Shown in pieces: positions 8,399-32,988 of a DNA stretch of 64,000 bases. Numbering within the stretch: the stretch's first letter is position 1; the number at the start of each line of letters is the position of its first letter. Under the pieces are notes generated by a model. That model ran no database searches. It was not told the DNA's origin and saw only the letters and a list, made by a program, of their open reading frames with translations. The stretch is taken from the sequence record NC_061447.1. One strand, 5' to 3'. The position numbers were made by a program, and so were the translations under genes.

Positions 8399-8895
8399 TG
8401 GAAACAAACTCAGTGGACGGAAGTCCTAATAGCGCAAGGCATCGCATTTTCTTCAAGCAGCCGAAACGAGTACCTCCCTTCGATACAGCTTTCGTTCGTT
8501 CCTCAAACAAGGAAGGACTGAAAGTTCTCCTATCGGCTGCTCCTGAACATTGTCAGATTATTTTGTTTACGGACGGCCCCGGCGCCGCTTACGCCTTGAA
8601 ACGCCTCTTTAAGCGCAACTTCAAACTCTGTTCGCAAGCTCCACAACTTGACCTTAGGACACTTACGTTCACAGGTCAGGTCGTTCTACAGTTCGTTCGC
8701 GGTGGTGCAGTCGTCGATCCACTCGCTCGTTACTTCTGTGCTGGTGATAGCTATCTGCATGAGCTTGCCCAGACGTCGAAGATTGCCGAAGTCGATACAG
8801 ATACGATTGATATGTTCTGTTGCGGCTTGGGGTTTCATCATGCGCTACGCGAACGCGGTCGAGGCCGTTCTCTCGTATTCGCGGAGGAACAATGA
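8398..8895 (+). CDS. hypothetical protein
   Basis: 165-aa ORF coupled on both sides. Confidence 0.65.
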   Translation: METNSVDGSPNSARHRIFFKQPKRVPPFDTAFVRSSNKEGLKVLLSAAPEHCQIILFTDGPGAAYALKRLFKRNFKLCSQAPQLDLRTLTFTGQVVLQFVRGGAVVDPLARYFCAGDSYLHELAQTSKIAEVDTDTIDMFCCGLGFHHALRERGRGRSLVFAEEQ

Positions 8896-9920
8896 GTAGA
8901 TCGTTCGCCTCTATCGGGAAAACTCCCGTTGCTGGCACGACACCGAAGATGAAAATCAAGTACGGTAAGCTGCCTATGCTGCATATCGTTGATGCCTCGA
9001 ACTGGATGTGCCGAGCATACTTTGCCACGAACAAGAATCCGACTTACGCCAAAGATGGTACTCCCAACTATGGCTTGCGTCAGTTCATGAACATGGCGAA
9101 AGACTTGATTGATATTGCGGCGAAAGACCCTAACGGTGCGTACATTGCGTGGTGCTTCGACCCAAGCAGTTCCGCAACATGGCGCTACCGTGCGATTCAA
9201 CAATGGGCTGCCGAGAACAAAAAGAAATACGTTAAGGAGGTCTTCAAGAAGTCGAGCGACTATAAGGGCAACCGAGATCGTTCGCTGACTGTCGAACTCC
9301 CTGTGCAAATGGAACTGGCGCAGCGTATTCTTGAAATGGCTGGGTACTACGTTGGCATAAAAGCGCCTTACGAATGTGATGACCTTGTAGGCACACTGAG
9401 TGATCGCTTCAAGCACAACTATCTGGTCAAGCTATACTCGCGTGATAAAGACTACGTGCAACTTGTGGACCACAAGAACGTTGAGCTTATCATGCAAGCG
9501 CAGTCTAATGCAGCCGAGCGTCGCTTCACGCTTAAAACTGCTCAAGGATTCTTTGGCGTACCTCCGGATCGCGTTATTGATATGCTGGCACTTTCCGGCG
9601 ATAGCGTTGATAACGTTCCAGGGATTCCGGGCATTGGCGAAAAGACTGCGGCCGAGTTCATTCACCGTTATGGCGGCGCGCTCGAACTTCGAGATGCGTT
9701 GTTGAGCGGCAAGTTGAAGTCGAATGCTCGTTGGGCGCAAGCACTGACAGGCAAGGTACCTTCAATGGATATTGAATTGCAAATGGAGCTTGTAACTATC
9801 GACCGTAACGTTCCGACTTTGCCTCGCAAGATCGAAGCGTTCGCGCCAGGCAGACCTGATATAAAAGCGTTGAAAGCAACTATGAAACGCTTGGGTCTAC
9901 CGCATCTATTACACGTCTAA
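8892..9920 (+). CDS. 5'-3' exonuclease / flap endonuclease (PolI N-terminal, T4 RNase H / T5 D15 family)
   Basis: IVDAS..YFA, CFD, YKGNR, ECDD, SRDKD, GDSVDNVPGIPGIGEKTA (H3TH). Confidence 0.92.
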   Translation: MSRSFASIGKTPVAGTTPKMKIKYGKLPMLHIVDASNWMCRAYFATNKNPTYAKDGTPNYGLRQFMNMAKDLIDIAAKDPNGAYIAWCFDPSSSATWRYRAIQQWAAENKKKYVKEVFKKSSDYKGNRDRSLTVELPVQMELAQRILEMAGYYVGIKAPYECDDLVGTLSDRFKHNYLVKLYSRDKDYVQLVDHKNVELIMQAQSNAAERRFTLKTAQGFFGVPPDRVIDMLALSGDSVDNVPGIPGIGEKTAAEFIHRYGGALELRDALLSGKLKSNARWAQALTGKVPSMDIELQMELVTIDRNVPTLPRKIEAFAPGRPDIKALKATMKRLGLPHLLHV

Positions 9921-9930
9921 TGAGGATATC

Positions 9931-10473
9931 ATGACGGATAAGATTACGCAGTTGGAGAAATGGTACGGAGCGGCGAAAGTCGCGTTTAAGATGGGCACTG
10001 TCAATCCTGATGGTGATGCAGCACTGCTTCTGGCTATTTATAAGCGATTGGCGAAAGCTGCCGAAGATTCGGGTGACAAAGACACTGTGACCGCAGATCG
10101 ATTGAATCTGCAAGAGTTCCTTGAGGATTTGCGCAAAGAACTCCGCATGTACGACCTGATCTGCCGCCGTTTCAATACTGACTTGTACCCACACATCAAA
10201 GTCAGTGAAGACGTTAAAATCTATATCGCACTCATGGCCACAACTCCAGGCAGTGCGGTAATGGCAATGACATATCTGTACCTTGCTCGCTGCTATTCGC
10301 TGCAAGACATGGTGCTGAATTTCCTGCCGAGTGGTTACCCTGGTGAAGATGCTCTTGGCCTTACGTGGAGCATTCAGAAAGGGAACAGCGATGCCTTCAC
10401 CGGAAACCTGGTGGACGATATCGAAACTGTAAATAGCCTGTACAATAAGATGTATAACTCGGGAGAGAAGTAA
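9931..10473 (+). CDS. hypothetical protein
   Basis: GAGGA SD, 180 aa. Confidence 0.7.
   Translation: MTDKITQLEKWYGAAKVAFKMGTVNPDGDAALLLAIYKRLAKAAEDSGDKDTVTADRLNLQEFLEDLRKELRMYDLICRRFNTDLYPHIKVSEDVKIYIALMATTPGSAVMAMTYLYLARCYSLQDMVLNFLPSGYPGEDALGLTWSIQKGNSDAFTGNLVDDIETVNSLYNKMYNSGEK
10427..10435 (+). promoter_or_regulatory. CTGTAAATA promoter-like motif
   Basis: 38 nt upstream of the 10473 start. Confidence 0.55.
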
Positions 10474-11066
10474 TGGATTTGTCTGCTATCGGTTACGCTC
10501 CGAAGCAGTTTCGAGTAATCCCCGTTGAGAAGGGCAATCTCGTTACTGACTTCATTCAAGGTAAGTTCCGCGTTATCGGCGTTGAGTGCAACGCTCGTGG
10601 TGCTTACGGTAGTCCCATTCAAAAGAGCATTGCACGTCGATTCCCGGAGGTTGTGCGCAAGGTCGAATCAATCGACTACGAACACGAACTCACTATCGGT
10701 AAGACGCACATGGTTCGTGTGGGTACTCAGCACCGCCGCAATCTGTTTGTGGCCAACATGCACATCGCTCGCGGTTTCGGTCTCGGCCAGAACGGTTCTT
10801 CGGAAGGTTATCACAAACCTATCAATCGTTTCAGTGAGAAGTTCCTGACGCGAGCGTTCGAAGACCTGCTGGAACAGGCAGACAAACTGAACATTGCATT
10901 GGACCGACAGATCGCTATTCAGCGTTTCTATGGCGGACTCGGCGGGGTTTCGTGGGAAGAAGTATGTGTCGTCCTTGATGCTATCTGTGAGAAGCACCAG
11001 TTCAACATGTACGCATACTTACCACGCAACTACAACACTAACTTTGTGCGGGGCGTTGCGCAATAA
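10473..11066 (+). CDS. macrodomain protein (Poa1p/DarG-like, divergent)
   Basis: KGNLV...ECNARGAYGSPIQKSIARRFP...VANM...IAIQRFYGGLGGVSW matches the macro-fold layout. Confidence 0.7.
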   Translation: MDLSAIGYAPKQFRVIPVEKGNLVTDFIQGKFRVIGVECNARGAYGSPIQKSIARRFPEVVRKVESIDYEHELTIGKTHMVRVGTQHRRNLFVANMHIARGFGLGQNGSSEGYHKPINRFSEKFLTRAFEDLLEQADKLNIALDRQIAIQRFYGGLGGVSWEEVCVVLDAICEKHQFNMYAYLPRNYNTNFVRGVAQ

Positions 11067-11423: not shown

Positions 11424-12181
11424 TAACTGTGCAGAAAATTGAAGCCCGTTTAAACAGACTGGATTATACTCGGCCCTCACCTGATCGTGAGATGCTTGAG
11501 GGACTTATGAAAGACGGACGCACTCGCATCCTCAGCAAGTCTGCTGAAAGTGATTTGTGCGCTGACTCAGATCGCTACTTTGAGTTCTGTCTTTCGCAGG
11601 TCGGCTCTTTCTGTACTGCCTCGTATAACGCTGTGGAGATTGGTCTGTCTCTCAACATCCAACCGATCTATATCGCTGCCGCTATTCATCTGTATGGCAG
11701 CGACTGGCAGTTCCGCTTCCTCGAACTTAAACGCTTCGGTCAACTGGCTAGGGGTGATTACTCGGTATGGAAGTCTGCTGACGCGTGGTTCGGTTTAGGT
11801 GAATGTCGCCGTCGTCTAGTGAGTGTTGGCACTACGTCTGAGATCTCAACTGGGCAATCTATTCTTCGCATGGCTGTACGCAAAGGCGAGATGGATAAGA
11901 TTCGTGAGATTGCTGAGGCGCACCCACATCGCATGATGTCCATTCTCGGCATGAAGCGTGAGCCACTCTATACTGATCCACGCATCGTCGCTTCAAAGAA
12001 GGCGCGTGAGAAAGCAAAAGCAGACGCGGCCGCTGCTGGTAAGAAACTGGCCGAGCCTCGCTCCTATGCAGACCTTACTCCTGCGTTCAACGGCTCTATC
12101 GCTCCACGTGACGTTACTCGTGGGTTCAGTGATCCCTCTGAAACTCGTAGTACGGTTAACGGTCGTCGTTTTCGCGTTTAA
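11420..12181 (+). CDS. hypothetical protein
   Basis: ATGA overlap, 253 aa. Confidence 0.7.
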   Translation: MITVQKIEARLNRLDYTRPSPDREMLEGLMKDGRTRILSKSAESDLCADSDRYFEFCLSQVGSFCTASYNAVEIGLSLNIQPIYIAAAIHLYGSDWQFRFLELKRFGQLARGDYSVWKSADAWFGLGECRRRLVSVGTTSEISTGQSILRMAVRKGEMDKIREIAEAHPHRMMSILGMKREPLYTDPRIVASKKAREKAKADAAAAGKKLAEPRSYADLTPAFNGSIAPRDVTRGFSDPSETRSTVNGRRFRV

Positions 12182-12190
12182 GGAAAAATA

Positions 12191-12574
12191 ATGGATAAGA
12201 AAATAATCAGTTTTCTTGTGGACAGTCTAAGCAGTGATGAAAGGGAACCTGCGGAGAAGTATGTGGGTAAAACTGCGGGACAAATAGCCAAGGAAGAGAC
12301 AGGCATTGCGTTTATCGTCAACAACGCATTCGCCATGAATCATCTTCTTTGGTTGCCTGATATGGAGCATGATTGGTTCACACCAGTCGAAGCCCTGATT
12401 CATTTATCAAGCGGTCTTATTGGTCATGTCGGCGATGTGCCTGTTTACAGCGATTGGTATTACGGTAGCCCGAGTGACCGTCAGCGGCCGTGTGATAAAA
12501 TAGCTCGCGTGGGCGTCGTCGATATTGCGGCCAATCAAATTTCTTTGCTGACTGTCGAACAATTTGCTCGCTAA
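12191..12574 (+). CDS. hypothetical protein
   Basis: AAGGA SD, 127 aa. Confidence 0.65.
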   Translation: MDKKIISFLVDSLSSDEREPAEKYVGKTAGQIAKEETGIAFIVNNAFAMNHLLWLPDMEHDWFTPVEALIHLSSGLIGHVGDVPVYSDWYYGSPSDRQRPCDKIARVGVVDIAANQISLLTVEQFAR

Positions 12575-12615
12575 CGGTAATTTCGAGCGTCAAAACAAAT
12601 AACGGAAATCCAATC

Positions 12616-13386
12616 ATGAGCAACGTTGATAAAACAATGCCGGAAGGTCGCTGGGAGTTCAATGAGCCAGTAGCTTCTGTGTTCGATAACATGCTGCAAA
12701 ACTCAATCCCATCGTATGACCGTATGCGTGACCTGACGTACCGTCTTGGTCGCCAGTTCGTAACACCTGGCTCGGCCATTGTCGATCTTGGCGCATCACT
12801 CGGTCGTGCTGTCGAACCGTTCTGTGCAGAGTTCGGCGAGTACCTGTATCTTCACGCTGCTGATCGTCCTGAGCCAGACCGTGAAGTAGGTAACCTGTAC
12901 TGCTGCTACGAAGTCGCGCCTGCGATGCTTGAGCGTCTGCGTGAAAACCCTGTGCTGAAAACGGCTAAAGCGAAGATCAGTAGTGAGTCGCTGGTGGAAG
13001 TAGACACGTTCCGCTTCGACGAGCAGGTTGAGTGCTCACTGATTCTGTCTGTGCTTACTCTACAGTTCACGCCGATTGAACACCGTCAGCACATCCTGGA
13101 GAAAGTGTACGACTCGTTGCAGAAAGGCGGCGCGTTTATTCTGGTTGAGAAAGTGTTGGGTGATGACAACTTCCTCGACCGTCTGCTGGTAGACACCTAC
13201 TACGGCATGAAAGGCGATAACGGCTACTCGCAAGAATCTATTGCGGCTAAGCGTAAGTCCCTCGAAGGCGTACTGGTGCCTGTGAAAGCTGCATGGAACG
13301 AAGAACTGCTGCGTAAAGCTGGCTTCGACCGTGTAGAGTGTTTCTACCGCGACCTGAACTTTGCTGGATGGATCGCAGTCAAATAA
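12616..13386 (+). CDS. cmoA: carboxy-S-adenosyl-L-methionine synthase (CmoA-like)
   Basis: WEFNEPVASVFDNMLQNSIPSY, DLGASLG, LTLQF, GGAFILVEK, NGYSQESIAAKRKSLE, AGF...LNF are colinear with E. coli CmoA, including the KR Arg. Confidence 0.88.
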   Translation: MSNVDKTMPEGRWEFNEPVASVFDNMLQNSIPSYDRMRDLTYRLGRQFVTPGSAIVDLGASLGRAVEPFCAEFGEYLYLHAADRPEPDREVGNLYCCYEVAPAMLERLRENPVLKTAKAKISSESLVEVDTFRFDEQVECSLILSVLTLQFTPIEHRQHILEKVYDSLQKGGAFILVEKVLGDDNFLDRLLVDTYYGMKGDNGYSQESIAAKRKSLEGVLVPVKAAWNEELLRKAGFDRVECFYRDLNFAGWIAVK

Positions 13387-13397
13387 GGTAAAACGAA

Positions 13398-14453
13398 ATG
13401 AGCGTAAGTGGTGATATTTATAACATCCCTCAACCGTTCGCCATGTATTGTGGCAACTGTGAAACTCGTGCTCAGGCAAAAGTTGCCTCAGGCACAATCG
13501 AATGGGCGGCAGAGAAAGTCTGCTGCGTTGTTGCCGACGATAACGGCCTGTTCCCTGATGTGCCTCACGTCAACATCGCAAGCGTCCATGCCACAGATGC
13601 ACGTACTCTGGTAATCGGCTGTGCACCGTTCGGCGGTAAGATTGACGAGCACATGGACCGCACTATTCGCAGTGCTATCTATCGTGGCATGAACGTCGCT
13701 GCCGCTATGCACAATCGTCTGGCTGATAATGCCGAGTACGTTGCGTTGGCCGAACAGTATAACGTCAAGCTGTATGACTTCCGCCACCGTCCTGATGCGT
13801 ACCCTCTAGGTACTGGCGAGAAGCGCAAAGGCATTCGTCTGCTAACTGTTGGCACCGATAGCTCCTGCGGTAAGAAGTTCACGACGTTGACTCTGTTTAA
13901 CGCGCTTAAGGCTCGTCATCCAGATACCGTATTCTGCTCTACTGGCCAGACTGGTTTTCTGATCAGTAACTGCGGCATCAACAACGATACGCTGGTGGCT
14001 GACTTCCTTGCAGGTGCTGCTGAGTCTTTATCTCCAGATGGTCCTGCTGATCGTGTGTATCTGATCGAAGGTCAGGGTGCTATTACTCACCCAGCGTATA
14101 CTGGCGGCAGCATGAGCCTGATTGCTGGCTCGCAGCCTGACTACTTCATCATGTGTCATGCGTGGGGCCGTAAGAACCAGCTCGGTGTTAAACGTGCGCC
14201 TGACCTGACATTCGAATTGACTGCTAACCTGGACGCAGCGGCCATTCACGGTCTTACTCCTGAGTATCTCGGTATCAGTGTCAATTTCTCTGAAAGCGAC
14301 CTGACTATCGAAGAACAAGACGATGCTATGCGCGAGATGGAGGACCTGTACTCGATGCCTGTGTTCGACCCATCGCGCGATCTGTCTTACGTTGCTGACA
14401 TTGCTGATCGACTTGAACGAGAGGCTATGTGCAGGAGCGAGTCCAATGGCTAA
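13398..14453 (+). CDS. DUF1611 family protein (DgcN-like, Rossmann plus P-loop)
   Basis: LLTVGTDSSCGKKFT, STGQTG, DFLAGAAE, IEGQGAITHPAY, GSQPD..IMCH. Confidence 0.85.
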   Translation: MSVSGDIYNIPQPFAMYCGNCETRAQAKVASGTIEWAAEKVCCVVADDNGLFPDVPHVNIASVHATDARTLVIGCAPFGGKIDEHMDRTIRSAIYRGMNVAAAMHNRLADNAEYVALAEQYNVKLYDFRHRPDAYPLGTGEKRKGIRLLTVGTDSSCGKKFTTLTLFNALKARHPDTVFCSTGQTGFLISNCGINNDTLVADFLAGAAESLSPDGPADRVYLIEGQGAITHPAYTGGSMSLIAGSQPDYFIMCHAWGRKNQLGVKRAPDLTFELTANLDAAAIHGLTPEYLGISVNFSESDLTIEEQDDAMREMEDLYSMPVFDPSRDLSYVADIADRLEREAMCRSESNG

Positions 14454-15315
14454 ACATCCTCTTCGCAAGCTGTTTGAACAGCACGTAAAGAAAGAGGTCA
14501 AAGCCAAAGAAGTGGCCGTTCTGCTTTCGAGCGGCCTCGACGGTTTGGTTAGCGCACTCGCCGCGCACGATCTCGGCATGAAGGTCCATGCCTTTACTTT
14601 CCAGATGGGCGACAACCAGAGCTTCGATAGCAAACACGCCGCAATCGTCGCACAGAAGATGGGCTGGGAGTTCACGCTCGTCAAAGTGCCTACGTCTGAC
14701 AGTGCTATCGCTCAGGGTTGGAAGACGCTACATAAAAAGTTCCGCTGCATTAAGAAGCGTGACTATGAGTGTGCGTACCCTATGGTGTATTGCTACAAGG
14801 CGATCAAAGAAGCTGGGTTTAAGTATGTGCTCAGTGGTCTGGTGGCCGACGGTTACTTCCTGTATAACCGCAATACGCACATTCAGAAAGTAAGTGGCCC
14901 GCACTCAGTCGCTGAAAAGTATCACGCGTACCGCACCGAATACTTCCGCCCGTGGATCAAAGACGGTAAGAAGTCTCTCGGTGTTGATGGGTATAACCCA
15001 AGCGGTATGCTGCAACACGAAATGCTGTGTGACCACTTCGGCCTCGTTCACGTTAACCCGTGGATGCAGCCGAAAGTATTTGATTACTTCATCAAGTACA
15101 CATGGCAGGAACTCAATCAGCCTAAGCAGAAACAACCTATTACAGAAGCATGGGCTGACCACATCGCTATTGTAGGGCATCGCCCACATCGCGGATATCA
15201 AACAGAAGCTGGAGTACCTGCGTACTTCGAACGCTTACTGGATAATCCTGAGATCAACTTCAACGGGCGCAAGCGTATCATGGATGTTGCCCGTGATTGG
15301 TCAACGAGGACGTAA
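14446..15315 (+). CDS. asparagine-synthetase-like ATP-dependent amide ligase (synthetase domain only)
   Basis: PP-loop VLLSSGLDG, AFTF, VLSGLVADGYF (cf. SGEGADE); no N-terminal Ntn glutaminase domain. Confidence 0.78.
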   Translation: MAKHPLRKLFEQHVKKEVKAKEVAVLLSSGLDGLVSALAAHDLGMKVHAFTFQMGDNQSFDSKHAAIVAQKMGWEFTLVKVPTSDSAIAQGWKTLHKKFRCIKKRDYECAYPMVYCYKAIKEAGFKYVLSGLVADGYFLYNRNTHIQKVSGPHSVAEKYHAYRTEYFRPWIKDGKKSLGVDGYNPSGMLQHEMLCDHFGLVHVNPWMQPKVFDYFIKYTWQELNQPKQKQPITEAWADHIAIVGHRPHRGYQTEAGVPAYFERLLDNPEINFNGRKRIMDVARDWSTRT

Positions 15316-15316
15316 C

Positions 15317-15937
15317 ATGTTAGTACACATCATTGACGGTGGCGTAGGCTGCAATTATGTAGCTGAGAAATTGCGTGAGTCGAATATCAACTGTCGCACT
15401 CATGCTCCAAACAATCCGCGCATTCGCGCTCAGTATGCTCCTTATCCTTCACTGTCTATGGGCTTTGAGGCACAGGAGATCGAGAAACATATCGGTAACG
15501 TGCTGGGCACCTATCGCGGACTGTTCCTGATCAGTAGTTACGTCGGCTCTCTTGTTGCACGTAGCATGATTGATCAATGCGGCCAGAGCCATAACATCAT
15601 CTATTGTGATGACTTGCAGTGTGGCTCAACGCCTGTTGTTGCTTCCTCAATTTCTGTAAACATCTACAAGAAGCAACGGCAACTCGGACGCATCGCTGGG
15701 CGCATCAAACACTTCGACCTTGACCACGAATTTATTATCGCTGATAAGTCAGTGCGGTTCGCGTCAGGCTTGGAGTTTGATGAACGCGGCGCGCGTGAAG
15801 AACTGGACGATACGCCTAAGTTCTTATCGAGTCCGTCAATGATTGTTGCAGCACACAAACTCGGTGTGAAGCGCAGCATGTATCACAACTATGCAGGGTT
15901 GGTGCGAGAGTTCCTTGAAAAGCGCCAGCAGCAATAA
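15317..15937 (+). CDS. divergent Asp/Glu racemase (MurI)-like protein
   Basis: IIDGGVG (cf. VFDSGVG), APYPSLS (cf. FPYGEKS), LISSYVGS where MurI has VACNTAS; catalytic Cys residues not evident. Confidence 0.45.
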   Translation: MLVHIIDGGVGCNYVAEKLRESNINCRTHAPNNPRIRAQYAPYPSLSMGFEAQEIEKHIGNVLGTYRGLFLISSYVGSLVARSMIDQCGQSHNIIYCDDLQCGSTPVVASSISVNIYKKQRQLGRIAGRIKHFDLDHEFIIADKSVRFASGLEFDERGAREELDDTPKFLSSPSMIVAAHKLGVKRSMYHNYAGLVREFLEKRQQQ

Positions 15938-15949
15938 CGCGAGGGCACG

Positions 15950-16213
15950 ATGATTAATCGCTTTCAGTTAAAACGAGTTCCAGTGATTGAAGCCTGTCAG
16001 TGGAACGGTGAGAACGTTGAGGAGATGAATAACTTTCTCAACGGCAGCGGTTACGTTGTAGGGCGTTACGTTCAAATCGGTGTGACTGACCAGTACGGCA
16101 AGCCCACTCTTGCGAACGTGGCAGTTGGCAACTATGCAATAAAACGCGAAGATGGTAAGTTCGATGCACTCACAGCATCCGAGCTGCACACCAACTACGT
16201 GTTGGCAGATTGA
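15950..16213 (+). CDS. conserved phage hypothetical protein
   Basis: IEACQWNGEN...GNYAIKREDGKF pattern common in phages. Confidence 0.7.
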   Translation: MINRFQLKRVPVIEACQWNGENVEEMNNFLNGSGYVVGRYVQIGVTDQYGKPTLANVAVGNYAIKREDGKFDALTASELHTNYVLAD

Positions 16214-16217
16214 GGGC

Positions 16218-16676
16218 ATGATGAACCTGTTTTCTATTTTAAAACAGCAAGTGAAAAAAGCGCTATCGACCGAAGCGAATCACGAGCCTGAGATTCGTTC
16301 GTTGTTCGACTGGCGTTACTCTGTGGAAATCAAAGGCCAGATGTATATCGTCGGCAAGACTGGCGCTAACACCTGCTTCTATATTGAGCCAGGTACTTCT
16401 GAGCCTATCGCTTGTTACCCTGATGCGTTACTCGAAAAGATCGACGAGTGGGGAGCGAGCAAGTACGTGTCGTATTCGATCTTCTTTAAACGCTTCGATA
16501 GCCCTGTCGCCGAGAACATCAAAACTCTCGAAAAGGCAATGAGCGGTAAGCCTAAGTCATTTAAGAAAGGCTACTTCATCTGTGGCGTGACGCCTAAAGG
16601 TAAGCGTGAGAAACTCTATCGCTTGCAGCAAGGTCTGTCAGGTATGCAGTGGGTAGCTGTGGAGAAACAAGCATGA
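16218..16676 (+). CDS. hypothetical protein
   Basis: GAGGG SD before ATG 16218. Confidence 0.65.
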   Translation: MMNLFSILKQQVKKALSTEANHEPEIRSLFDWRYSVEIKGQMYIVGKTGANTCFYIEPGTSEPIACYPDALLEKIDEWGASKYVSYSIFFKRFDSPVAENIKTLEKAMSGKPKSFKKGYFICGVTPKGKREKLYRLQQGLSGMQWVAVEKQA

Positions 16677-16911: not shown

Positions 16912-17205
16912 ATGATTAGTGACATTACAGTCGGCCATATCTACAAGTCGCATAGCGACAAGCCATTTATTGTTGACTGCATTGCTGCACACGGACAGGA
17001 TTGCTCACTACCTATGGTTGTCTATCGTAATCTCGAACCTACGTCAGACAGACCTGCTGATAGCGTGTGGGTAATCCCAGAATCGTTGTTTGTGATGCAG
17101 TTCTCTGAGTACGAATCAGGAGAGCACCATGAACACAACGAGCTTGTATCGTCATCTGGAATCAAGGGGATTTGCTCCTTCTTCCTATCACTGTTGGCTA
17201 AGTGA
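16912..17205 (+). CDS. DUF1653-like SH3-fold protein
   Basis: IYKSHSDKPFIV...MVVYRNL...VWVIPESLF. Confidence 0.6.
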   Translation: MISDITVGHIYKSHSDKPFIVDCIAAHGQDCSLPMVVYRNLEPTSDRPADSVWVIPESLFVMQFSEYESGEHHEHNELVSSSGIKGICSFFLSLLAK

Positions 17206-17645
17206 AACGCAAATGACCGTGCCTCTGTTTGGCTTTGATCGAGCCATGCGCGGTCTACAGGTCTACACACCAGATGCACCAAAGCACGATAAGAACCCAA
17301 AAGAGTGTCGCTACTTCACGCGGGCATTCGGTGGCAAGCAGTTGGTGTGGGGATCGGAAATTAAACCTGAACGGGTCGACCGTATTCTTAACTGAGTCTG
17401 TGTTCAAGGCATGTGCTCTGCATCGCGTTGGACTTAACGCTTGGTCCGTTCTAGGCTCGGATGTTAGTCTGCACCTTTACCATCAGTTGCGTCTTCTCGG
17501 TCTACGCTTCGTCTGTCTTGGTGACAACGATGCAGCAGGTGAAAAGTTTAGTCAGACGTTTGGACTAGGCACCACCAGCAAAGACCTTGATGAAATGACT
17601 GACAGTGAACTTCTCGATCTAACTCTCCCATTCGTGAGGAAGTAG
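17129..17645 (+). pseudogene. Toprim/primase-like gene split by a frameshift near 17360
   Basis: The N-half frame ends ...VWGSEIKPERVDRILN*; the next frame continues LNLNGSTVFLTESVFKA...VLGS...GDNDAAG (Toprim E and DxD motifs). Confidence 0.65.
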
Positions 17646-19216: not shown

Positions 19217-20059
19217 ATGACCGTAATCAGTCCAATCCGTTATCAGGGCAATAAGCGAAGCCTTATCCCTCTTATTCTTGAGCACACACCAAGCGTACAG
19301 GACTGTCCTCGTATGGTCGATGTGTTTGGTGGTAGTGCTACCGTCTGCGCTAACATGCCACAGAAGTTTCGCGTGTACAACGAGCTTAGTCCTCAGGTGT
19401 TTGAGATCGTTAAGATGCTGGTGGAACAAGACCCGAAGAAAACTCTCGGTCAAGTCAAGCGTCTGGTCAAACACTGGTGTCTGACAAACAGCAACGAAGC
19501 GAACTATGATGCGTTTCGAACTGTCGTCCAGAAGAAGCGTACACCGATACTACATTACGTTGCACACAGACACGCGCACTCGAACATGCTGCGCTTCAAC
19601 CAGCAAGGTGTGTATAACGTCGGCTTCGGTGATCGTGGCCTGATTGGAAAGTTCGACGAGCTGGAGCATGAACTCACTACCTTCCACAGTCACATGCAGG
19701 GTGTCCACCTGACGAACATGAAGTATGGTAAGTTGCTGAGTCGCTTAGGCCATCAACTGAACTGTAACACGTTCTGCTACTTCGACCCTCCATATCTGGC
19801 GAGCGGTGCAATGCAGTACGGCAAGTGGACGGAAACTAACGAGCGTAACCTGCTGGCCACTCTGGAGCAACTCAATCGTTTAGGCGTACCGTGGATGTTG
19901 AGCAACGTGACCGAGCACCGACACTTCTCAAACGATTTGTTGAAGCGTTGGTTAAAGAAACATGCAACAACCGTGCTGTACCCAAACAAAAGCTATGCGA
20001 TGAACAACGGCCAGAGTGGCTCGCATGGTACTGTTGAAATTCTGGCAATGAACTATTGA
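19217..20059 (+). CDS. dam: DNA adenine methyltransferase (Dam/D12 class)
   Basis: SPIRYQGNK, DVFGGSATV, YNEL, YFDPPY, WMLSN. Confidence 0.9.
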   Translation: MTVISPIRYQGNKRSLIPLILEHTPSVQDCPRMVDVFGGSATVCANMPQKFRVYNELSPQVFEIVKMLVEQDPKKTLGQVKRLVKHWCLTNSNEANYDAFRTVVQKKRTPILHYVAHRHAHSNMLRFNQQGVYNVGFGDRGLIGKFDELEHELTTFHSHMQGVHLTNMKYGKLLSRLGHQLNCNTFCYFDPPYLASGAMQYGKWTETNERNLLATLEQLNRLGVPWMLSNVTEHRHFSNDLLKRWLKKHATTVLYPNKSYAMNNGQSGSHGTVEILAMNY

Positions 20060-22494: not shown

Positions 22495-22885
22495 TGATGC
22501 CTCGTCCGATGAAATCCGCCGTTACTACGAGCAGATTCATCGTGATGCCGAAGCGGTCATGCAGCAGGTGTGGGCGCTTCGTGGTTGGACTGTACGTTGG
22601 GCATGGCACAATGGCATTTGCGACGATTGTGAGTTTGTCTTTGACGAGACAGGCAAGTGTCGGGGTACTAAGTCTGACTGCATCCCACAACAAATGGGCA
22701 TAGCTGATCGCATTGACGAGCTAAAGCTGTTTGTCTCGCATACCAAGAAATCTGTAAAGATCAGCAACAAGGGCGATGAAAATCCAGTTGAAGGTAAAGG
22801 CCGTAATCTGCGGCTTGCCTATCTTGATTGGTTGCTCAACGTCGAAAAGAGAAAAGCGGAGGAAAGAACGTGCGCTGCACCTTAA
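22475..22885 (+). CDS. hypothetical protein
   Basis: GGGAG SD before ATG 22475. Confidence 0.65.
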   Translation: MYRQLSDDASSDEIRRYYEQIHRDAEAVMQQVWALRGWTVRWAWHNGICDDCEFVFDETGKCRGTKSDCIPQQMGIADRIDELKLFVSHTKKSVKISNKGDENPVEGKGRNLRLAYLDWLLNVEKRKAEERTCAAP

Positions 22886-23391
22886 ACGAATTACCGATTA
22901 ACATCACTCAGGCTGAACACATCATGGCGAGCGTGTTTACTCTGGCTGGTGCTTCAAAGTCAAAACGTCGTGCGACTGCTGCGATGTTGATTCATTTCCA
23001 CAACGGCTTCCCTACCATTGTGAGCAGCGGCGTTAACGGTACTGAGCCTGGCGCAAGCAACGTCATGGAGAACGAAGACCTGACGTTATCGCTCGACACG
23101 GTTATCCATGCAGAGGTGAACTGCCTAAACCGCATGGAAGAGTACAGCATGTGGGCAAACGAAGAAGATATTCTGTTCTGCACCGATTCGCCGTGCCCTA
23201 ACTGTTTGGCTGATCTCGAAGCCGAAGGCGTTAAGACAGTTGTGTATGCGCGTGAATATCGCCTGACTGATCATCTGGACGCATCTCCTATCAAGATGTT
23301 CTGTCTGGATATGGACAGCGTTGTCCGGCGTATGCAGCACGGCATCGACCGCATCAAAGAAGTGATCGCAACAACACCAGCGTCTAACTAA
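22870..23391 (+). CDS. dCMP deaminase
   Basis: GVNG, IHAEVN, TDSPCPNC, VVYAREYR zinc-deaminase motifs. Confidence 0.88.
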   Translation: MRCTLNELPINITQAEHIMASVFTLAGASKSKRRATAAMLIHFHNGFPTIVSSGVNGTEPGASNVMENEDLTLSLDTVIHAEVNCLNRMEEYSMWANEEDILFCTDSPCPNCLADLEAEGVKTVVYAREYRLTDHLDASPIKMFCLDMDSVVRRMQHGIDRIKEVIATTPASN

Positions 23392-26712: not shown

Positions 26713-27071
26713 CTCCAGTAATTCGCTTTGATGCTAAGACGCGTGAACTGCTGGCAAAGATCTTCGGCATACACAAGCCGTTCTTTGTCGTGCGTCGAGA
26801 TACAATCATTGGCGGCCCAGGTCCTGATTCAGATTTAGGTTCAGCGCTGGGCTTTCGTGTGTATCTGTCTAATGGCACGAACACTGTTACCGTTCCTCGC
26901 GTCAAAGGTCTTGACCTTGGCGACAAGCTCTATCTGGGCGAAGACGAGGAAGTGTACGAATGGCATCCGCATTTCGACCGTGAGTACATGGCAGTCGGTG
27001 ATAGCCAACCAGAAGCACTCGCCTTCGAACTCCATCCAATCATCTACCATAAAGACAGACGGAACTCGTAA
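26709..27071 (+). CDS. hypothetical protein
   Basis: ATGA overlap. Confidence 0.65.
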   Translation: MTPVIRFDAKTRELLAKIFGIHKPFFVVRRDTIIGGPGPDSDLGSALGFRVYLSNGTNTVTVPRVKGLDLGDKLYLGEDEEVYEWHPHFDREYMAVGDSQPEALAFELHPIIYHKDRRNS

Positions 27072-28177
27072 TGAGCAAACAACAAACCCTTGATCTGCGT
27101 GACCCTAACCAGTACGAACTCTACTCTCTACATTGCGTAGACGAGCAGTACATCAATCTGGGCAACGCTATCATGATGCACGGTACCGACGAAACGGACC
27201 CAGGCCGCACCGAAGATACGTGGCGCACTCTGATTGGTGTTGGATTCCAGTTGTCTAACACGCTGATCGCTTTCCCTGCGCTGGTGTCTGCGCGTAAGAA
27301 CTGGTACGCTGCTGTAGATGAAATGTGCTGGATGGCTCGCGGTGAAACGAACATCGGCAGCCTCGGCTCCAAAATCTGGAACGAGTGGGCAGACGAAGAC
27401 GGCGAGTGCGGTCCTATCTACGGTCTGATGTGGCGTATGTGGCCTGATATCAAAACGTTCCCGACTATTGAGTCGATGAAAGAACGTCAGATTAGCGATG
27501 CTGAAATCGAGCGTATCTCCAAAGAGATCAATCGCATGAAAGCCGCTGGTTATACCGAAACACAAATGGCAGATGGCCGTGTGTGCTATGAAGGTACTGT
27601 TGATCAGTTCGCTGATGCTCTGCGCCAAGTGATGAACCGCAGTCGCTCTCGTCGTATTCGCGTTCAGGCATATAACCCAGCGTATCTCCACATGCAGGGT
27701 CTGCCTCCGTGCCACACCGAGTTCGAGTTCAACGTCACTAAGCCGACGCTGTATGAAGTTGCTCAGATGGAAGCGCGTCAAATGGCACCTGCCGAAGATA
27801 CGCTGCATATCACTGTGACCATGCGTTCCAACGATGTGCTGCTTGGGCGTCCGTTCAATATCATGGGCTACAGTGCGATGCACCAGATGATCGCCAAGTG
27901 GGCTGGCCTGAACGTAGGTAGCTTTACGCTGAACACTACCAACACTCACCTGTATACGCATCACTTCGAAGCGTTTGAAAAGCAACGTGAGCAGTGGGCA
28001 GTTCTCGCAGACAACATGAAACGCACAGGCGAACCTGTTGTCTATCCTATGCTGGAAATCAGCGACGACATTCTCGGCCTGACGCCAGAAGAGTTGCTGG
28101 ACAACGCCAACGCAGAGTGGTTCCAGCTCCTCGATTATGCGCCATCACCAGCGGTTAAGGGACGTGTGACCAAATGA
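27071..28177 (+). CDS. thyA: thymidylate synthase
   Basis: IWNEWADEDG.CGPIYG, SRRI, LPPCH, MRSNDVLLGRPFN, THLY; dUMP-type Asn. Confidence 0.92.
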   Translation: MSKQQTLDLRDPNQYELYSLHCVDEQYINLGNAIMMHGTDETDPGRTEDTWRTLIGVGFQLSNTLIAFPALVSARKNWYAAVDEMCWMARGETNIGSLGSKIWNEWADEDGECGPIYGLMWRMWPDIKTFPTIESMKERQISDAEIERISKEINRMKAAGYTETQMADGRVCYEGTVDQFADALRQVMNRSRSRRIRVQAYNPAYLHMQGLPPCHTEFEFNVTKPTLYEVAQMEARQMAPAEDTLHITVTMRSNDVLLGRPFNIMGYSAMHQMIAKWAGLNVGSFTLNTTNTHLYTHHFEAFEKQREQWAVLADNMKRTGEPVVYPMLEISDDILGLTPEELLDNANAEWFQLLDYAPSPAVKGRVTK

Positions 28178-30145: not shown

Positions 30146-30856
30146 ATGGCAAAAACTGCTATCAAAGCAAAGGACGGGAAAAAGAAAAAGAATGACGGAC
30201 TAAAGTTTGAGTTGAATAAACTCAGCTCCGTCTCTCAGTTGAAGGGGGCTACGTACAACCCGCGTTTCATTACAGACAGTCGCCTGAAAGCACTCGAAGG
30301 TTCTTTGGGTAGCTTCGGCGACTTGTCTGGTATCGTGTTCAACAACAACATCAAATCTGGTGTGTTGATCTCTGGCCACCAGCGCCTGAAATCAATCGAA
30401 GGCTGGAAGACTCGTATCGAGATTCAGAAGTCTGTTGATAAGCACGGCACAATCGGCCTGGGTTACATTCACGCGACGCATCCAAAGAAAGCTGATAAAG
30501 TGATCAGCATTCCTCTGCGTGTCGTGAACTGGACCGATAAGAAAGCCGAGTACGCTGCGAACATCGCGGCAAACGCCCATGGCGGTGAGTTCGATAACAA
30601 GAAACTCGCCAAGCTGGTTGAACAACTCGACCTCAATACAATCAAGCCTCAACTGCTCGGTCTCGACCCGTTAGAAATTCGCGGTCTTCAAGCCAAGCTG
30701 AAAGTTCAGGCCGTTGTGCAGGACGAGAAACGTGCTGGCAAGACTACTGGCCAGATGAACGGTAGTACAGGCAAGTTCAACGAGTATAGCCCAGATGATG
30801 TGGGTGACGCTCTGAACTGCACCTGCCCGCGTTGTGGATTCAAGTTCGAGGGATAA
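30146..30856 (+). CDS. ParB/Srx-like N-terminal domain protein with CPRCG tail
   Basis: YNPR.I...L..SL..FG...IVFN...LISGHQRL...ANIAAN...GEFD; C-terminal CTCPRCGFKF. Confidence 0.8.
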   Translation: MAKTAIKAKDGKKKKNDGLKFELNKLSSVSQLKGATYNPRFITDSRLKALEGSLGSFGDLSGIVFNNNIKSGVLISGHQRLKSIEGWKTRIEIQKSVDKHGTIGLGYIHATHPKKADKVISIPLRVVNWTDKKAEYAANIAANAHGGEFDNKKLAKLVEQLDLNTIKPQLLGLDPLEIRGLQAKLKVQAVVQDEKRAGKTTGQMNGSTGKFNEYSPDDVGDALNCTCPRCGFKFEG

Positions 30857-30858
30857 TA

Positions 30859-32988
30859 ATGATCATCAAGCCGCCTACGATGAAGGAAATCAACAAGCTG
30901 GATAAACCCTGGCGTGGTATGAGTTTCTTCGCAGGTTGCGGTGGTTCTTCTACCGGTCACAAGATGGCCGGTATCAACATCGTGCTGAGTAACGAGTTTG
31001 TTGACTCGGCGCGTGAGTCGTATGAAGCAAACCACCCGACAACCAAAGTGCTGCCGCATGATATTCGTCGCTTAGACCCAGGCAAGCTGATGCGCTATGC
31101 TGGTCTGTCTAAAGGCGAATTGGATTTACTTGACGGTAGTCCTCCTTGCTTTACCGAAGACACTATCATTCATACAGCAGACGGCATGAAGTTCATCTCG
31201 GACATGAACGTCGGCGATAAAGCGATGACAAGCATCGGTCAGTATCTTCCTGTGTATGACACTATGGTTCGTCCGTATGTCGGTACTATGCACAAGATTG
31301 AAACTCTGATCAGTGCAAACAACGCAACGCCCGAGCATCCGTTCTTCATTCGTCGTCCGCTTGAGTCTGGTGGCTTCTCTGACCCGTTCTGGTGTGACGC
31401 TAAAGACGTGCAGGAAGGTGACCTGGTCGGTACTCCAAGAACTACTCCTGACATTGGTGCAGATGCAGTACACGCCCAGATGGAACAACTGCCGAAGTTG
31501 ATTCAGCAGTGGGTGAGCATCCCTGAGTTCTGGTGGATGGTAGGTCACTGGTGTGATCGCGGTTCAATCGAGACTGTTAGTGGTGTAGAAGTTGTTAGCT
31601 TCGAATCGCATACCAGTCTGGAAAACGCGATGATTGAGCAGGCGTTTGATGCGCTTAAACTCAGTAGCCTGAACCGTATCGACCGCATGACAGCACAACG
31701 TAAAACGTTCCGTACTGTTATCGACGCCGAGCTGGTGCAGTTCCTGCGCCGCTTCGTCAGTGCTGGCAACAACACGTTCTCTCGTCGTCTACCTGCTCTG
31801 GTATTCCACCTGAGCACCGAGCTGAAACGTCAATTCATTCTCGGCTGCGCTGGGCATGACTACGTTACAGCGATGGGCACTGGCCTTGCTATCACGTCTT
31901 CAAGCAAGCGCTTCCTGTTAGAGATGAACTACCTGTGCTGTTCTGCGTTCAACCGTCCGCTATTCGACGGAATGATTTGGGGCGACGTGTACTTCGGTAG
32001 CGCGTTAACTCCAAAAGAGCGTAACAGTGCGCGTGAACATCTCGGCTATTTGTTCCTGCAGGAAGAGCACAACTTCTTCCACGAGTTCGATAAAGAAGAC
32101 CCGAACCTGTGGGTACAAGTGATTGAGAACCTTGCGTATCAGGCAACTTGTGACGTCTATAACTTCTCGGTTGAAGTTGACGAAACCTACGTGGCTAATG
32201 GTACTGTGGTGCACAACTGCAAAGGCTTCTCGACTGCTGGCGTGAAAGAAGAAGGCTGGGGCAAAGAAGTTAAGTACAGCGATAACAAGTATCAGCAGGT
32301 TGATGACCTGTTCGATCAGTATTGCCGTATGCTGGAAGGCATGATGCCGAAAGTGTTCACTGCGGAGAACGTTAGTGGTCTTGTTAAGGGCGCTTCGAAA
32401 GGTTACTTCATCGAGATCATGAAAGAGTTCGACAGGATTGGGTATTACGTCCGAGCGCCGCTGCTTAACGCTGCCTGGCTCGGTGTGCCTCAGTCCCGTG
32501 AGCGTATCATCTTCATGGGTGTACGCAAAGACGTAGCACACGCTCTCGGTCACAAGAGCATTAAGACCGCTGTGCCTGATGTTGTGCCTTGTGACACAAT
32601 GGCATTCCTTGCCGATGCGCTGCCGCATATTCAACGGTATAAGTCCACGAAGAAAGATATCATTACGTATCTGCCTGCGATGAACGGACCGATGCCGACT
32701 ATCACTGCGGCCGATGCGATAGCCTATGAAACTGCGCGGTTCTCGTCTGCTGGTTTCATCGAAGATAACAAAGGCCATCGCCGTAAACTGACCATCGACG
32801 AACTCAAAGTTATTTCTGGTCTGCCCTCTGACTATAAGCTGGTGGGCAAATTCGAAGAACAATGGGAGCGTCTCGGTCGTATCTGTGTGCCAGCAATGAC
32901 ACACGCTGCATCCAAAGCGCTTATCGAACACGTCTTACTTCCGTACGCGAAGAAGCGTAAGAAGAAGCCTGGCGATATCTTCAAGTAA
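30859..32988 (+). CDS. C5-cytosine DNA methyltransferase homolog with intein; motif X GN->GR (candidate carboxymethyltransferase)
   Basis: Motif I FFAGCGG, IV GSPP/C (split by intein), VI AENV, VIII QSRERIIF, X WERLGRICVP. Confidence 0.9.
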   Translation: MIIKPPTMKEINKLDKPWRGMSFFAGCGGSSTGHKMAGINIVLSNEFVDSARESYEANHPTTKVLPHDIRRLDPGKLMRYAGLSKGELDLLDGSPPCFTEDTIIHTADGMKFISDMNVGDKAMTSIGQYLPVYDTMVRPYVGTMHKIETLISANNATPEHPFFIRRPLESGGFSDPFWCDAKDVQEGDLVGTPRTTPDIGADAVHAQMEQLPKLIQQWVSIPEFWWMVGHWCDRGSIETVSGVEVVSFESHTSLENAMIEQAFDALKLSSLNRIDRMTAQRKTFRTVIDAELVQFLRRFVSAGNNTFSRRLPALVFHLSTELKRQFILGCAGHDYVTAMGTGLAITSSSKRFLLEMNYLCCSAFNRPLFDGMIWGDVYFGSALTPKERNSAREHLGYLFLQEEHNFFHEFDKEDPNLWVQVIENLAYQATCDVYNFSVEVDETYVANGTVVHNCKGFSTAGVKEEGWGKEVKYSDNKYQQVDDLFDQYCRMLEGMMPKVFTAENVSGLVKGASKGYFIEIMKEFDRIGYYVRAPLLNAAWLGVPQSRERIIFMGVRKDVAHALGHKSIKTAVPDVVPCDTMAFLADALPHIQRYKSTKKDIITYLPAMNGPMPTITAADAIAYETARFSSAGFIEDNKGHRRKLTIDELKVISGLPSDYKLVGKFEEQWERLGRICVPAMTHAASKALIEHVLLPYAKKRKKKPGDIFK
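31147..32217 (+). mobile_element. intein (357 aa) with degenerate LAGLIDADG region, inserted before the catalytic Cys
   Basis: CFTEDT..., block B ATPEHP, block F/G VYNFSVEVDETYVANGTVVHN then Cys+1; LAGLIDADG-like boxes (MVGHWCDRGS, FILGCAGHD) lack canonical acidic residues. Confidence 0.9.

Follow-up and report, generated by a model that had tools for sequence, protein, structure and literature searches.

A predicted CmoA-CmoX-CmoY-type cytosine hypermodification locus with a DgcN-related DUF1611 gene beside CmoY in Erwinia phage pEa_SNUABM_33

The closest described precedent for the gp017-gp020 locus of Erwinia phage pEa_SNUABM_33 is the DNA modification pathway of Synechococcus phage S-B43 (Yang et al., Nat Commun 2025; PMC12783734), in which CmoA makes carboxy-S-adenosylmethionine (carboxy-SAM, Cx-SAM), the C5-methyltransferase homolog CmoX produces 5-carboxymethylcytosine, and the asparagine-synthetase homolog CmoY ligates glycine with ATP to yield 5-glycylcarboxymethylcytosine. 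The hallmarks of SpCmoX are an SPPC motif and Arg350, which stands in place of the usual Asn and holds the carboxymethyl group, and a ParBc protein is often encoded near CmoX. SpCmoY alone was enough for amide formation in S-B43, other ligase clusters were considered by the authors probably to use different amines, and the glycine amide, described in late 2025, is the only chemically known amide of the pathway (PMC12783734). According to the same paper, carboxy-SAM is also taken by M.MpeI N374K, an engineered bacterial C5-methyltransferase acting at CG sites, via a basic residue replacing the motif Asn, and the hypermodification of hydroxymethylpyrimidines (5-hydroxymethyldeoxyuridine and 5-hydroxymethyldeoxycytidine, 5hmdU/5hmdC) follows a shared logic of a C5 handle followed by variable, swappable tailoring enzymes. 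The stretch of DNA analyzed here, of 64,000 nucleotides and referred to as the window, corresponds to bases 1-64000 of the pEa_SNUABM_33 genome (NC_061447.1), with 100% identity and no shift in coordinates over 12000-16500. The phage belongs to the genus Alexandravirus, has a jumbo genome of 263 kb and was isolated on Erwinia amylovora; its close relatives include Dickeya phage AD1, the Erwinia phages Alexandra and 2910A, and numerous pEa_SNUABM isolates.

Genes gp017 to gp020, together with gp049 and gp050, are likely to encode a post-replicative cytosine hypermodification system of the CmoA-CmoX-CmoY type with extra tailoring parts. As judged from sequence comparison, the known core is a member of this kind, with its testable defining features present and a variant PP-loop in gp019, and its genes were probably already within the bioinformatic set of PMC12783734; the new element of the locus is the DUF1611 gene tied to CmoY. 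All three S-B43 enzymes have homologs here (CmoA at 30% identity, CmoY at 33-34%, and CmoX as the best Protein Data Bank (PDB) match, with the SPPC motif and the Arg), and a ParB-like gene lies next to CmoX, as PMC12783734 notes for many contigs. In S-B43, however, cmoY sits between cmoA and cmoX, whereas in pEa_SNUABM_33 cmoX is 15 kb away and split by an intein. The Erwinia phage, a jumbo phage of an enterobacterial plant pathogen, further differs in having a CmoY of a separate subfamily, a DUF1611/DgcN-like gene between cmoA and cmoY, and genes for a racemase-fold protein and a phrog_23597 protein after cmoY. The parts of the candidate system are as follows.

gp017: 12616..13386, + strand, CmoA homolog (predicted carboxy-SAM synthase)
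gp018: 13398..14453, + strand, DUF1611 protein related to the D-glutamate N-acetyltransferase DgcN
gp019: 14446..15315, + strand, predicted CmoY-type ATP-dependent amide ligase of a separate subfamily; asparagine-synthetase PP-loop domain, no glutaminase
gp020: 15317..15937, + strand, orphan protein with a predicted glutamate-racemase-like fold
gp049: 30146..30856, + strand, ParB-like protein directly upstream of cmoX; phrog_620
gp050: 30859..32988, + strand, CmoX homolog (predicted DNA cytosine C5-carboxymethyltransferase) with an intein
Intein in cmoX: 31147..32217, + strand, inserted right before the catalytic Cys

An earlier, preliminary description of this DNA, made from its letters alone, had read positions 12616-15937 as four coupled genes encoding a CmoA look-alike that keeps the C-terminal Arg, a DUF1611 protein, an asparagine-synthetase domain with no glutaminase and a MurI-like fold, and had assigned the use of Cx-SAM to a variant C5-methyltransferase at 30859. 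The coupling was confirmed, as gp017-gp020 lie on the same strand and are tightly packed: the first two genes are 11 nt apart, the second and third overlap by 8 nt, and 1 nt separates the third from the fourth. Comparison with homologs placed the true starts of gp019 at 14446 (not 14323) and of gp020 at 15317 (not 15284), correcting the mechanically called open reading frames (ORFs). Ratios of nonsynonymous to synonymous substitution (dN/dS) against three relatives were 0.00-0.14 across gp017, gp018, gp019 and gp020, indicating purifying selection on all four. Scans for promoters and terminators gave no more sites than were found in shuffled sequence.

The first gene, gp017, matched the CmoA model TIGR00740 with an E value of 3.5e-42 and 144.7 bits, below the NCBI equivalog cut-off of 193.3. 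SpCmoA, whose activity has been verified biochemically, reaches no more than 115.6 bits with this model and so scores below gp017; the shortfall is therefore not an argument against function. Further matches were obtained to phrog_4752 (E 6.6e-80) and, over the full length, to the E. coli CmoA structure 4GEK (E 4.2e-30), and the dN/dS of the gene was 0.03-0.08. The C-terminal Lys-Arg of CmoA has a role in carboxylate binding. In gp017, the Lys-Arg of the motif AAKRKSLE aligned with that of E. coli CmoA (4GEK), in agreement with the preliminary description, but in a MAFFT alignment SpCmoA has Glu at this column and an Arg three residues later, which weakens Lys-Arg as a test. In metagenomic relatives, a chorismate mutase gene was seen beside cmoA (L019, 4622-5089; L022, 36-317), as was a gene for 3-deoxy-D-arabino-heptulosonate 7-phosphate (DAHP) synthase beside cmoA or cmoY (L017, 9943-10806); such neighbors would agree with a demand for prephenate, which CmoA uses as co-substrate.

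Both RefSeq and PHROG name the gp017 family a tRNA methyltransferase, and bacterial CmoA acts in tRNA modification; gp017 might thus serve the formation of uridine 5-oxyacetic acid (cmo5U) in tRNA through the CmoB of the host, with its neighbor genes being unrelated. This is regarded as extremely unlikely. As the preliminary description had stated, no tRNA was found in a search of the window, and neither the RefSeq annotation nor the ten mid-size ORFs scanned showed a CmoB-like protein, the CmoB profile not having been run on every ORF. A CmoX carrying the Cx-SAM arginine is present, and the precedent of S-B43 is a role in DNA (PMC12783734). Furthermore, a Dickeya-phage paper lists a cmoA-type methyltransferase, an asparagine synthase and a cytosine methyltransferase as common to AD1 and Y3 and missing from their relative JA11, a distribution which implies that cmoA, cmoY and cmoX were gained and lost together.

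The best solved relative of gp050 was SpCmoX (8YF3; E 5.6e-54), well above the HaeIII and HhaI methylases, and the match to PF00145 had an E value of 1.8e-37. With the exteins compared separately rather than joined, the GSPPC motif was found to be kept, GSPP ending the N-extein and the Cys being the first residue past the intein, and the Arg of the gp050 motif ERLGRI aligned, by counting in the printed alignment, with R350 of SpCmoX, where the usual residue is Asn. The same Gly-Arg occurs in the CmoX of phage PaBG and of metagenomic contig L020. On these grounds gp050 is a CmoX homolog, for which carboxymethylation and splicing are predicted, and the assignment of Cx-SAM use to the methyltransferase at 30859 gained support. 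In contrast to the engineered M.MpeI N374K, gp050 is natural and has Arg as its basic residue. The intein comprises 357 residues, begins with Cys and ends with His-Asn, the +1 residue being the Cys of the SPPC motif; its matches to the Hint and Intein_splicing models fall below the cut-offs. It matched 51 records of Erwinia, Dickeya and Yersinia jumbo phages (62-100% identity among the matches listed) and was absent from the CmoX of PaBG and of the metagenomic contigs. Directly upstream of cmoX, gp049 matched phrog_620 (E 3.3e-32) and shared 42-47% identity with the ParB-like genes found ahead of CmoX in PaBG and contigs L019, L020, L021, L033 and L034. The genomic association typical of the pathway is thereby seen, with cmoA and cmoY lying 15 kb upstream in pEa_SNUABM_33 and being contiguous in relatives.

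For gp019, the match to PF00733 (E 1.6e-13) covered Pfam positions 2-132 of 354, and that to TIGR01536 covered positions 233-387 of 517, that is, the PP-loop part only, which confirmed a synthetase domain without the glutaminase domain. A sequence search of gp019 against PDB chains found nothing. By tblastn, the similarity to S-B43 CmoY, the gene between cmoA and cmoX, had E values of 5e-35 to 5e-46. In an alignment of 14 phage CmoYs, the gp019-type proteins were 60-87% identical to one another, 33-36% identical to SpCmoY and 21-27% identical to the other jumbo-phage CmoYs; the PP-loop reads SSGLDG in this subfamily versus SGGVDS in SpCmoY, the final Ser being replaced by Gly in six of six members, and the subfamily carries an insertion of about 14 residues. 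These comparisons identify gp019 as a homolog of CmoY and place it in a subfamily apart. Homology to the characterized enzymes suggests a core pathway in which gp017 would make carboxy-SAM from SAM and host prephenate, spliced gp050 would transfer the carboxymethyl group onto C5 of cytosine in phage DNA, and gp019 would adenylate the carboxylate of carboxymethylcytosine and form an amide. Whereas hydroxymethylpyrimidine systems use a hydroxyl, the predicted handle here would be a carboxylate, installed post-replicatively from carboxy-SAM and decorated by an amide.

The identification of the second gene as a DUF1611 protein was upheld by matches of gp018 to DUF1611_N (E 7.5e-18) and DUF1611_C (E 5.8e-46), and by a match to the NCBIfam DgcN model NF041892 with an E value of 1.5e-83. 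As the score of 280.5 bits does not reach the equivalog cut-off of 480, gp018 is, by this model, not a DgcN equivalog. Its best solved relative was 7XRJ (E 1.6e-51), with 319 residues aligned and the GTD..GK loop conserved. The identity of DgcN is drawn from NCBIfam and from a citing preprint, which names 7XRJ the D-glutamate acetyltransferase DgcN of Yu et al. (ISME J 2023); according to a later survey, DgcN begins an irreversible racemisation route for D-acidic amino acids. Thus gp018 resembles the DgcN of the DgcN-DgcA pair of marine bacteria in its two DUF1611 domains, the 7XRJ alignment and the loop, and differs from it in its score below the cut-off and in its neighbor, which is CmoY rather than the bacterial MR_MLE racemase; its substrate is presumably other than free D-glutamate bound for catabolism.

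The link between DUF1611 and the pathway was supported by its place beside CmoY, which was conserved in all the phage lineages checked. Of the records in the phage collection, 34 contained DUF1611; all were Erwinia or Dickeya jumbo phages, and a gp019-type CmoY was present in all 34. In phage contigs from public assemblies, DUF1611 proteins of 35-55% identity were always encoded directly upstream of CmoY or with one alanine-racemase-like (Alr-like) gene between, and in several of these metagenomic contigs ParB-CmoX and CmoA were adjacent. The gene orders were as follows.

L014, L016 and L017: DUF1611-Alr-like-CmoY
L020 and L033: ParB-CmoX-DUF1611-CmoY-CmoA
L019: ParB-CmoX, chorismate mutase, CmoA-DUF1611-CmoY
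L022: contig begins at chorismate mutase, same as L019 from there on
L021: CmoX-DUF1611-CmoY
L034: ParB-CmoX, CmoA-DUF1611-CmoY

The order DUF1611-CmoY is constant while the order of the clusters varies, and the pairing therefore survives cluster reshuffling; it also occurs with a second CmoY subfamily. An alignment-query search of public assemblies found no phage DUF1611 of at least 35% identity outside a cmo cluster. Seven distant loci (L035-L041; 29-31% identity, in uncultivated virus genomes (UViGs) of 30-58 kb) had no cmo genes and were treated as an outgroup. Against AD1 (L011), the synonymous divergence (dS) of DUF1611 was 0.63 at 89% amino acid identity, versus a dS of 0.08 and 99-100% amino acid identity for the flanking cmoY and gp020, which suggests a recombinational cassette exchange of the DUF1611 gene alone.

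As DgcN is a D-glutamate catabolic enzyme, it was also considered that gp018 and gp020, along with the alanine-racemase-like gene added in relatives, may be auxiliary metabolic genes acting on free D-amino acids of the host, their adjacency to cmoY being merely inherited. The predicted fold of gp020, which is that of the enzyme making D-glutamate for the cell wall, and the addition of the alanine-racemase-like gene itself would agree with this. Such an explanation is judged very unlikely, however, since DUF1611 remains beside CmoY while the cluster order is reshuffled and was found in phages, at the identity searched, only within cmo clusters. In addition, the two bacterial gp018 homologs recovered (36-39% identity) have an MR_MLE racemase gene as neighbor, the DgcN-DgcA arrangement, whereas the phage DUF1611 genes have CmoY as their partner and never MR_MLE.

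Its conserved gene position and its homology to a D-glutamate N-acetyltransferase suggest that gp018, translationally coupled to gp019, would work with the ligase on the amino-acid part of the modification. Two routes can be envisaged. In the first, gp018 would N-acylate a (D-)amino acid or a diamino acid, either ahead of the ligation or once the residue, still bearing a free amine, has been attached. In the second, gp018 would present a D-acidic amino acid to the gp019 adenylate, so that a cytosin-5-yl-acetyl group replaces the acetyl group; the product would be an analog of N-acetyl-D-glutamate in which the methyl of the acetyl is borne by cytosine. Under either route, the final base should be a 5-carboxymethylcytosine amide unlike the glycine amide of S-B43, and the final DNA base of pEa_SNUABM_33 is, on the evidence of its genes, probably new. 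The accessory parts of the candidate system would be gp020 and gp022, and the likely benefit would be that host nucleases are kept from the phage DNA, a function also proposed in the case of S-B43.

The fact that SpCmoY alone suffices for amide formation in S-B43 raises the alternative that the base is the same as in that phage, a glycine or plain amino-acid amide made by CmoA, CmoX and CmoY, with gp018 and gp020 being peripheral, for example by acting on amino-acid pools. The similarity of gp019 to SpCmoY, which is closer than that to other jumbo-phage CmoYs, points the same way, and the known DgcN reaction does not obviously feed an amide ligase. On the other hand, the gp019-type CmoY stands apart as a subfamily, with a PP-loop variant and an insertion of its own; the DUF1611 gene, whose translation is coupled to that of gp019, keeps its position across lineages and rearrangements and is under purifying selection. 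This alternative is therefore held to be unlikely, and a system with additional tailoring by gp018 is preferred.

The protein encoded by gp020 had no sequence match in Pfam, NCBIfam, PHROG or the PDB, the last also searched by profile, and a Pfam search with 15 family members gave no match even at an E value of 10. Its family is tiny, with 17 clusters at 90% identity in a set of 5.8 billion proteins and five in a set of 1.84 billion representatives. An AlphaFold2 model built with 16 close homologs was unusable (predicted local distance difference test (pLDDT) 43.8); once four distant homologs were added, the pLDDT rose to 91.5, with a predicted template modeling score (pTM) of 0.88. When this model was compared with the PDB using Foldseek, the top nine matches were all glutamate racemases (E 4.7e-5 to 1.7e-3, template modeling (TM) scores 0.44-0.62, Foldseek probability 0.99-1.00). 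The MurI-like fold of the preliminary description was thus recovered at the level of the fold, but not at the level of sequence or of catalytic residues. The likeness to MurI/RacE lies in the predicted two-domain fold and in a weak resemblance of sequence between the first strand-loop-helix and residues 24-41 of E. coli MurI; gp020 differs in its identity of about 10%, in the lack of a profile match, in its length of 206 versus about 265-285 residues, and in having serines where, by position in the model, a racemase would have its two catalytic cysteines. S73-S74 occupy the turn that follows strand 69-72, and S171-S172 the turn that follows strand 168-170. Both S74 and S172 are invariant, and they are placed much as Cys92 and Cys204 are in E. 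coli MurI, this mapping being positional in the model and not a superposition; there is no invariant Cys at or beside either turn. By this residue test, gp020 is apparently not a glutamate racemase. The family was also rejected as a sequence homolog of E. coli MurI (hhalign probability 2.9%, with only the first 18 residues aligned) and of the 203-residue protein that follows CmoY in PaBG (hhalign probability 9%), and a global pairwise alignment of gp020 and MurI was meaningless and discarded.

Homologs of gp020 were also found in relatives without DUF1611 and were missing from the DUF1611-bearing SNUABM_13 group. Of the proposal that the second and fourth genes supply or tailor the amine, the part concerning gp018 was therefore favored by its position beside CmoY, and the part concerning gp020 was not, given its lack of the cysteines and its occurrence without DUF1611. 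Of the four genes whose co-occurrence with CmoX had been suggested for survey, cmoA, DUF1611 and cmoY are clustered with it in several metagenomic contigs; gp020 does not track DUF1611. It is possible, though somewhat unlikely, that gp020 is a non-catalytic binding protein outside the pathway, perhaps an inhibitor of host DNA gyrase. The invariant serines at the positions of Cys92 and Cys204, the failure of the family to track either DUF1611 or any one CmoY subfamily, and the inhibition of DNA gyrase by the glutamate racemases of E. coli and M. tuberculosis, as reported in PMC1635304, would all be consistent with such a role. Against it, the homologs were without exception encoded a short way downstream of the cmoY region, with two genes in between in the case of Y3, and the twelve residues that are invariant down to 25% identity suggest a ligand site; the mapping of Cys to Ser, moreover, is positional only. 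With gp020 kept as an accessory part of the hypermodification system, a fuller version of the scheme can be offered tentatively, as more doubtful than probable: the DgcN-like enzyme and a dedicated CmoY would install a D-amino-acid amide, possibly N-acylated, on 5-carboxymethylcytosine, so that a D-amino acid would be borne by a DNA base; gp020 would be a Ser/Ser variant of the glutamate-racemase fold, newly active on this moiety; and the swappable cassettes between cmoA and cmoY (DUF1611 alone, with a glycosyltransferase-like (GT-like) protein, with an alanine-racemase-like protein, or the oxygenase of Y3) would correspond to a family of bases in Erwinia jumbo phages that are otherwise nearly identical.

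Several observations weigh against the hypermodification scheme preferred here, or against details of it. Simple DgcN-type acetylation of the alpha-amine of glutamate would leave CmoY no amine and does not fit, and, with gp018 scoring below the DgcN cut-off, it may use another substrate or even another acyl donor. The last residue of the gp019 PP-loop is Gly, whereas SpCmoY and the other phage CmoYs have Ser. The cmoX gene lies 15 kb from the gp017-gp020 operon and its product requires protein splicing for activity. The occurrence of gp020 without DUF1611, and of DUF1611 without gp020, indicates that gp020 is not tied to the DUF1611 step. The contigs bearing DUF1611-CmoY possibly belong to one broad jumbo-phage lineage, in which case shared ancestry contributes to the co-occurrence, and no chemical data for pEa_SNUABM_33 or its relatives were found in the literature searched.

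A cyanophage pathway combining CmoA, a methyltransferase and an amide ligase, to which the preliminary description had pointed, is real and is the CmoA-CmoX-CmoY pathway of S-B43 (PMC12783734). The statement of that description that no version with DUF1611 and racemase-like partners is known holds in the literature searched: neither DUF1611, nor a racemase, nor Erwinia is mentioned in PMC12783734 or its supplements, and no later paper on such a version was found. The locus thus offers a concrete and recurrent fourth enzyme for the pathway, a relative of a D-glutamate acetyltransferase, and cultured sister phages of Erwinia and Dickeya, with cassettes one or two genes apart, would allow the chemistry to be compared directly, gene by gene. 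New amide-linked DNA bases would bear on the evasion of restriction and other nucleic-acid defenses by phages and on enzymatic tools for DNA labeling. As these phages are candidates for the biocontrol of fire blight, hypermodification of their DNA would also be relevant to sequencing and quality control.

Two further small genes follow gp020, and the cassettes of the relatives vary around them.

gp021: 15950..16213, + strand, small conserved ORF between gp020 and gp022; phrog_36935
gp022: 16221..16676, + strand, phrog_23597 protein accompanying CmoA/CmoY clusters

The match of gp021 to phrog_36935 had an E value of 1.7e-43, and relatives have an annotated ORF of equal length (264 nt) at this position. 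For gp022, no Pfam or PDB match was found; it matched phrog_23597 (E 1.6e-75), a family shared with PaBG_00179, which is located between cmoA and cmoY. Homologs of gp022 lie directly after cmoY in L019, L021 and L022 and inside the cluster in L017 and L020. When the phage collection was searched by tblastn with a family member, phrog_23597 was confined to the group formed by Erwinia, Dickeya and Yersinia phages and PaBG, which also has close relatives of CmoX. From this distribution, gp022 looks like an unrecognized member of the CmoA/CmoX/CmoY system. Four cassettes were distinguished among these nearly identical phages, in the interval from cmoA to the genes past cmoY.

Cassette 1: DUF1611-cmoY-gp020, in pEa_SNUABM_33, AD1, 2910A, Alexandra and SNUABM_16/18/22/28
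Cassette 2: the same with a 420-residue protein (weak glycosyltransferase-1 match) and an alanine-racemase-like protein, in the SNUABM_23 group
Cassette 3: with the 420-residue protein and no gp020, in the SNUABM_13 group
Cassette 4: a different CmoY and no DUF1611, in SNUABM_5, 39 and Y3, with an added 2-oxoglutarate-Fe(II) (2OG-Fe(II)) oxygenase in Y3

The extra cassette genes of the sister phages lie at 2773-5995 of L003, 3697-4956 of L004 and 4271-4906 of L008. In the window, no homologs were found of the chorismate mutase, the DAHP synthase, the alanine-racemase-like protein, the GT-like protein or the Y3 oxygenase.

Other genes of the window were also inspected. The product of gp045 (27071-28177), annotated as hypothetical, is a member of the thymidylate synthase family (E 1.4e-55) with some 100 additional residues; it was considered as a pyrimidine hydroxymethylase competing for C5 and rejected, its best solved relatives being ordinary thymidylate synthases. 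A deoxycytidine monophosphate (dCMP) deaminase is annotated at 22870-23391. A few kilobases downstream of the operon, positions 19217-20059 encode a D12-class N6-adenine DNA methyltransferase (PF02086, E 5.7e-23), and several relatives have annotated adenine or DNA methylases at a similar position; the DNA may therefore carry N6-methyladenine (6mA) besides the cytosine modification. Both 5'-3' exonuclease domains (E 1.5e-24 and 2.5e-18) were recognized in gp011 (8892-9920), which is annotated as hypothetical. A further hypothetical gene, at 10473-11066, is syntenic with genes annotated as O-acetyl-ADP-ribose deacetylase and Appr-1-p processing protein (macro domain) in Y3 and pEa_SNUABM_5. At 17129-17645, RefSeq has a 60-residue "DNA primase", and a longer, overlapping ORF in another frame runs on downstream; a primase gene may here be split over two frames by one frameshift. 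At the same position, Y3 has two overlapping ORFs, one of which is named putative DNA primase.

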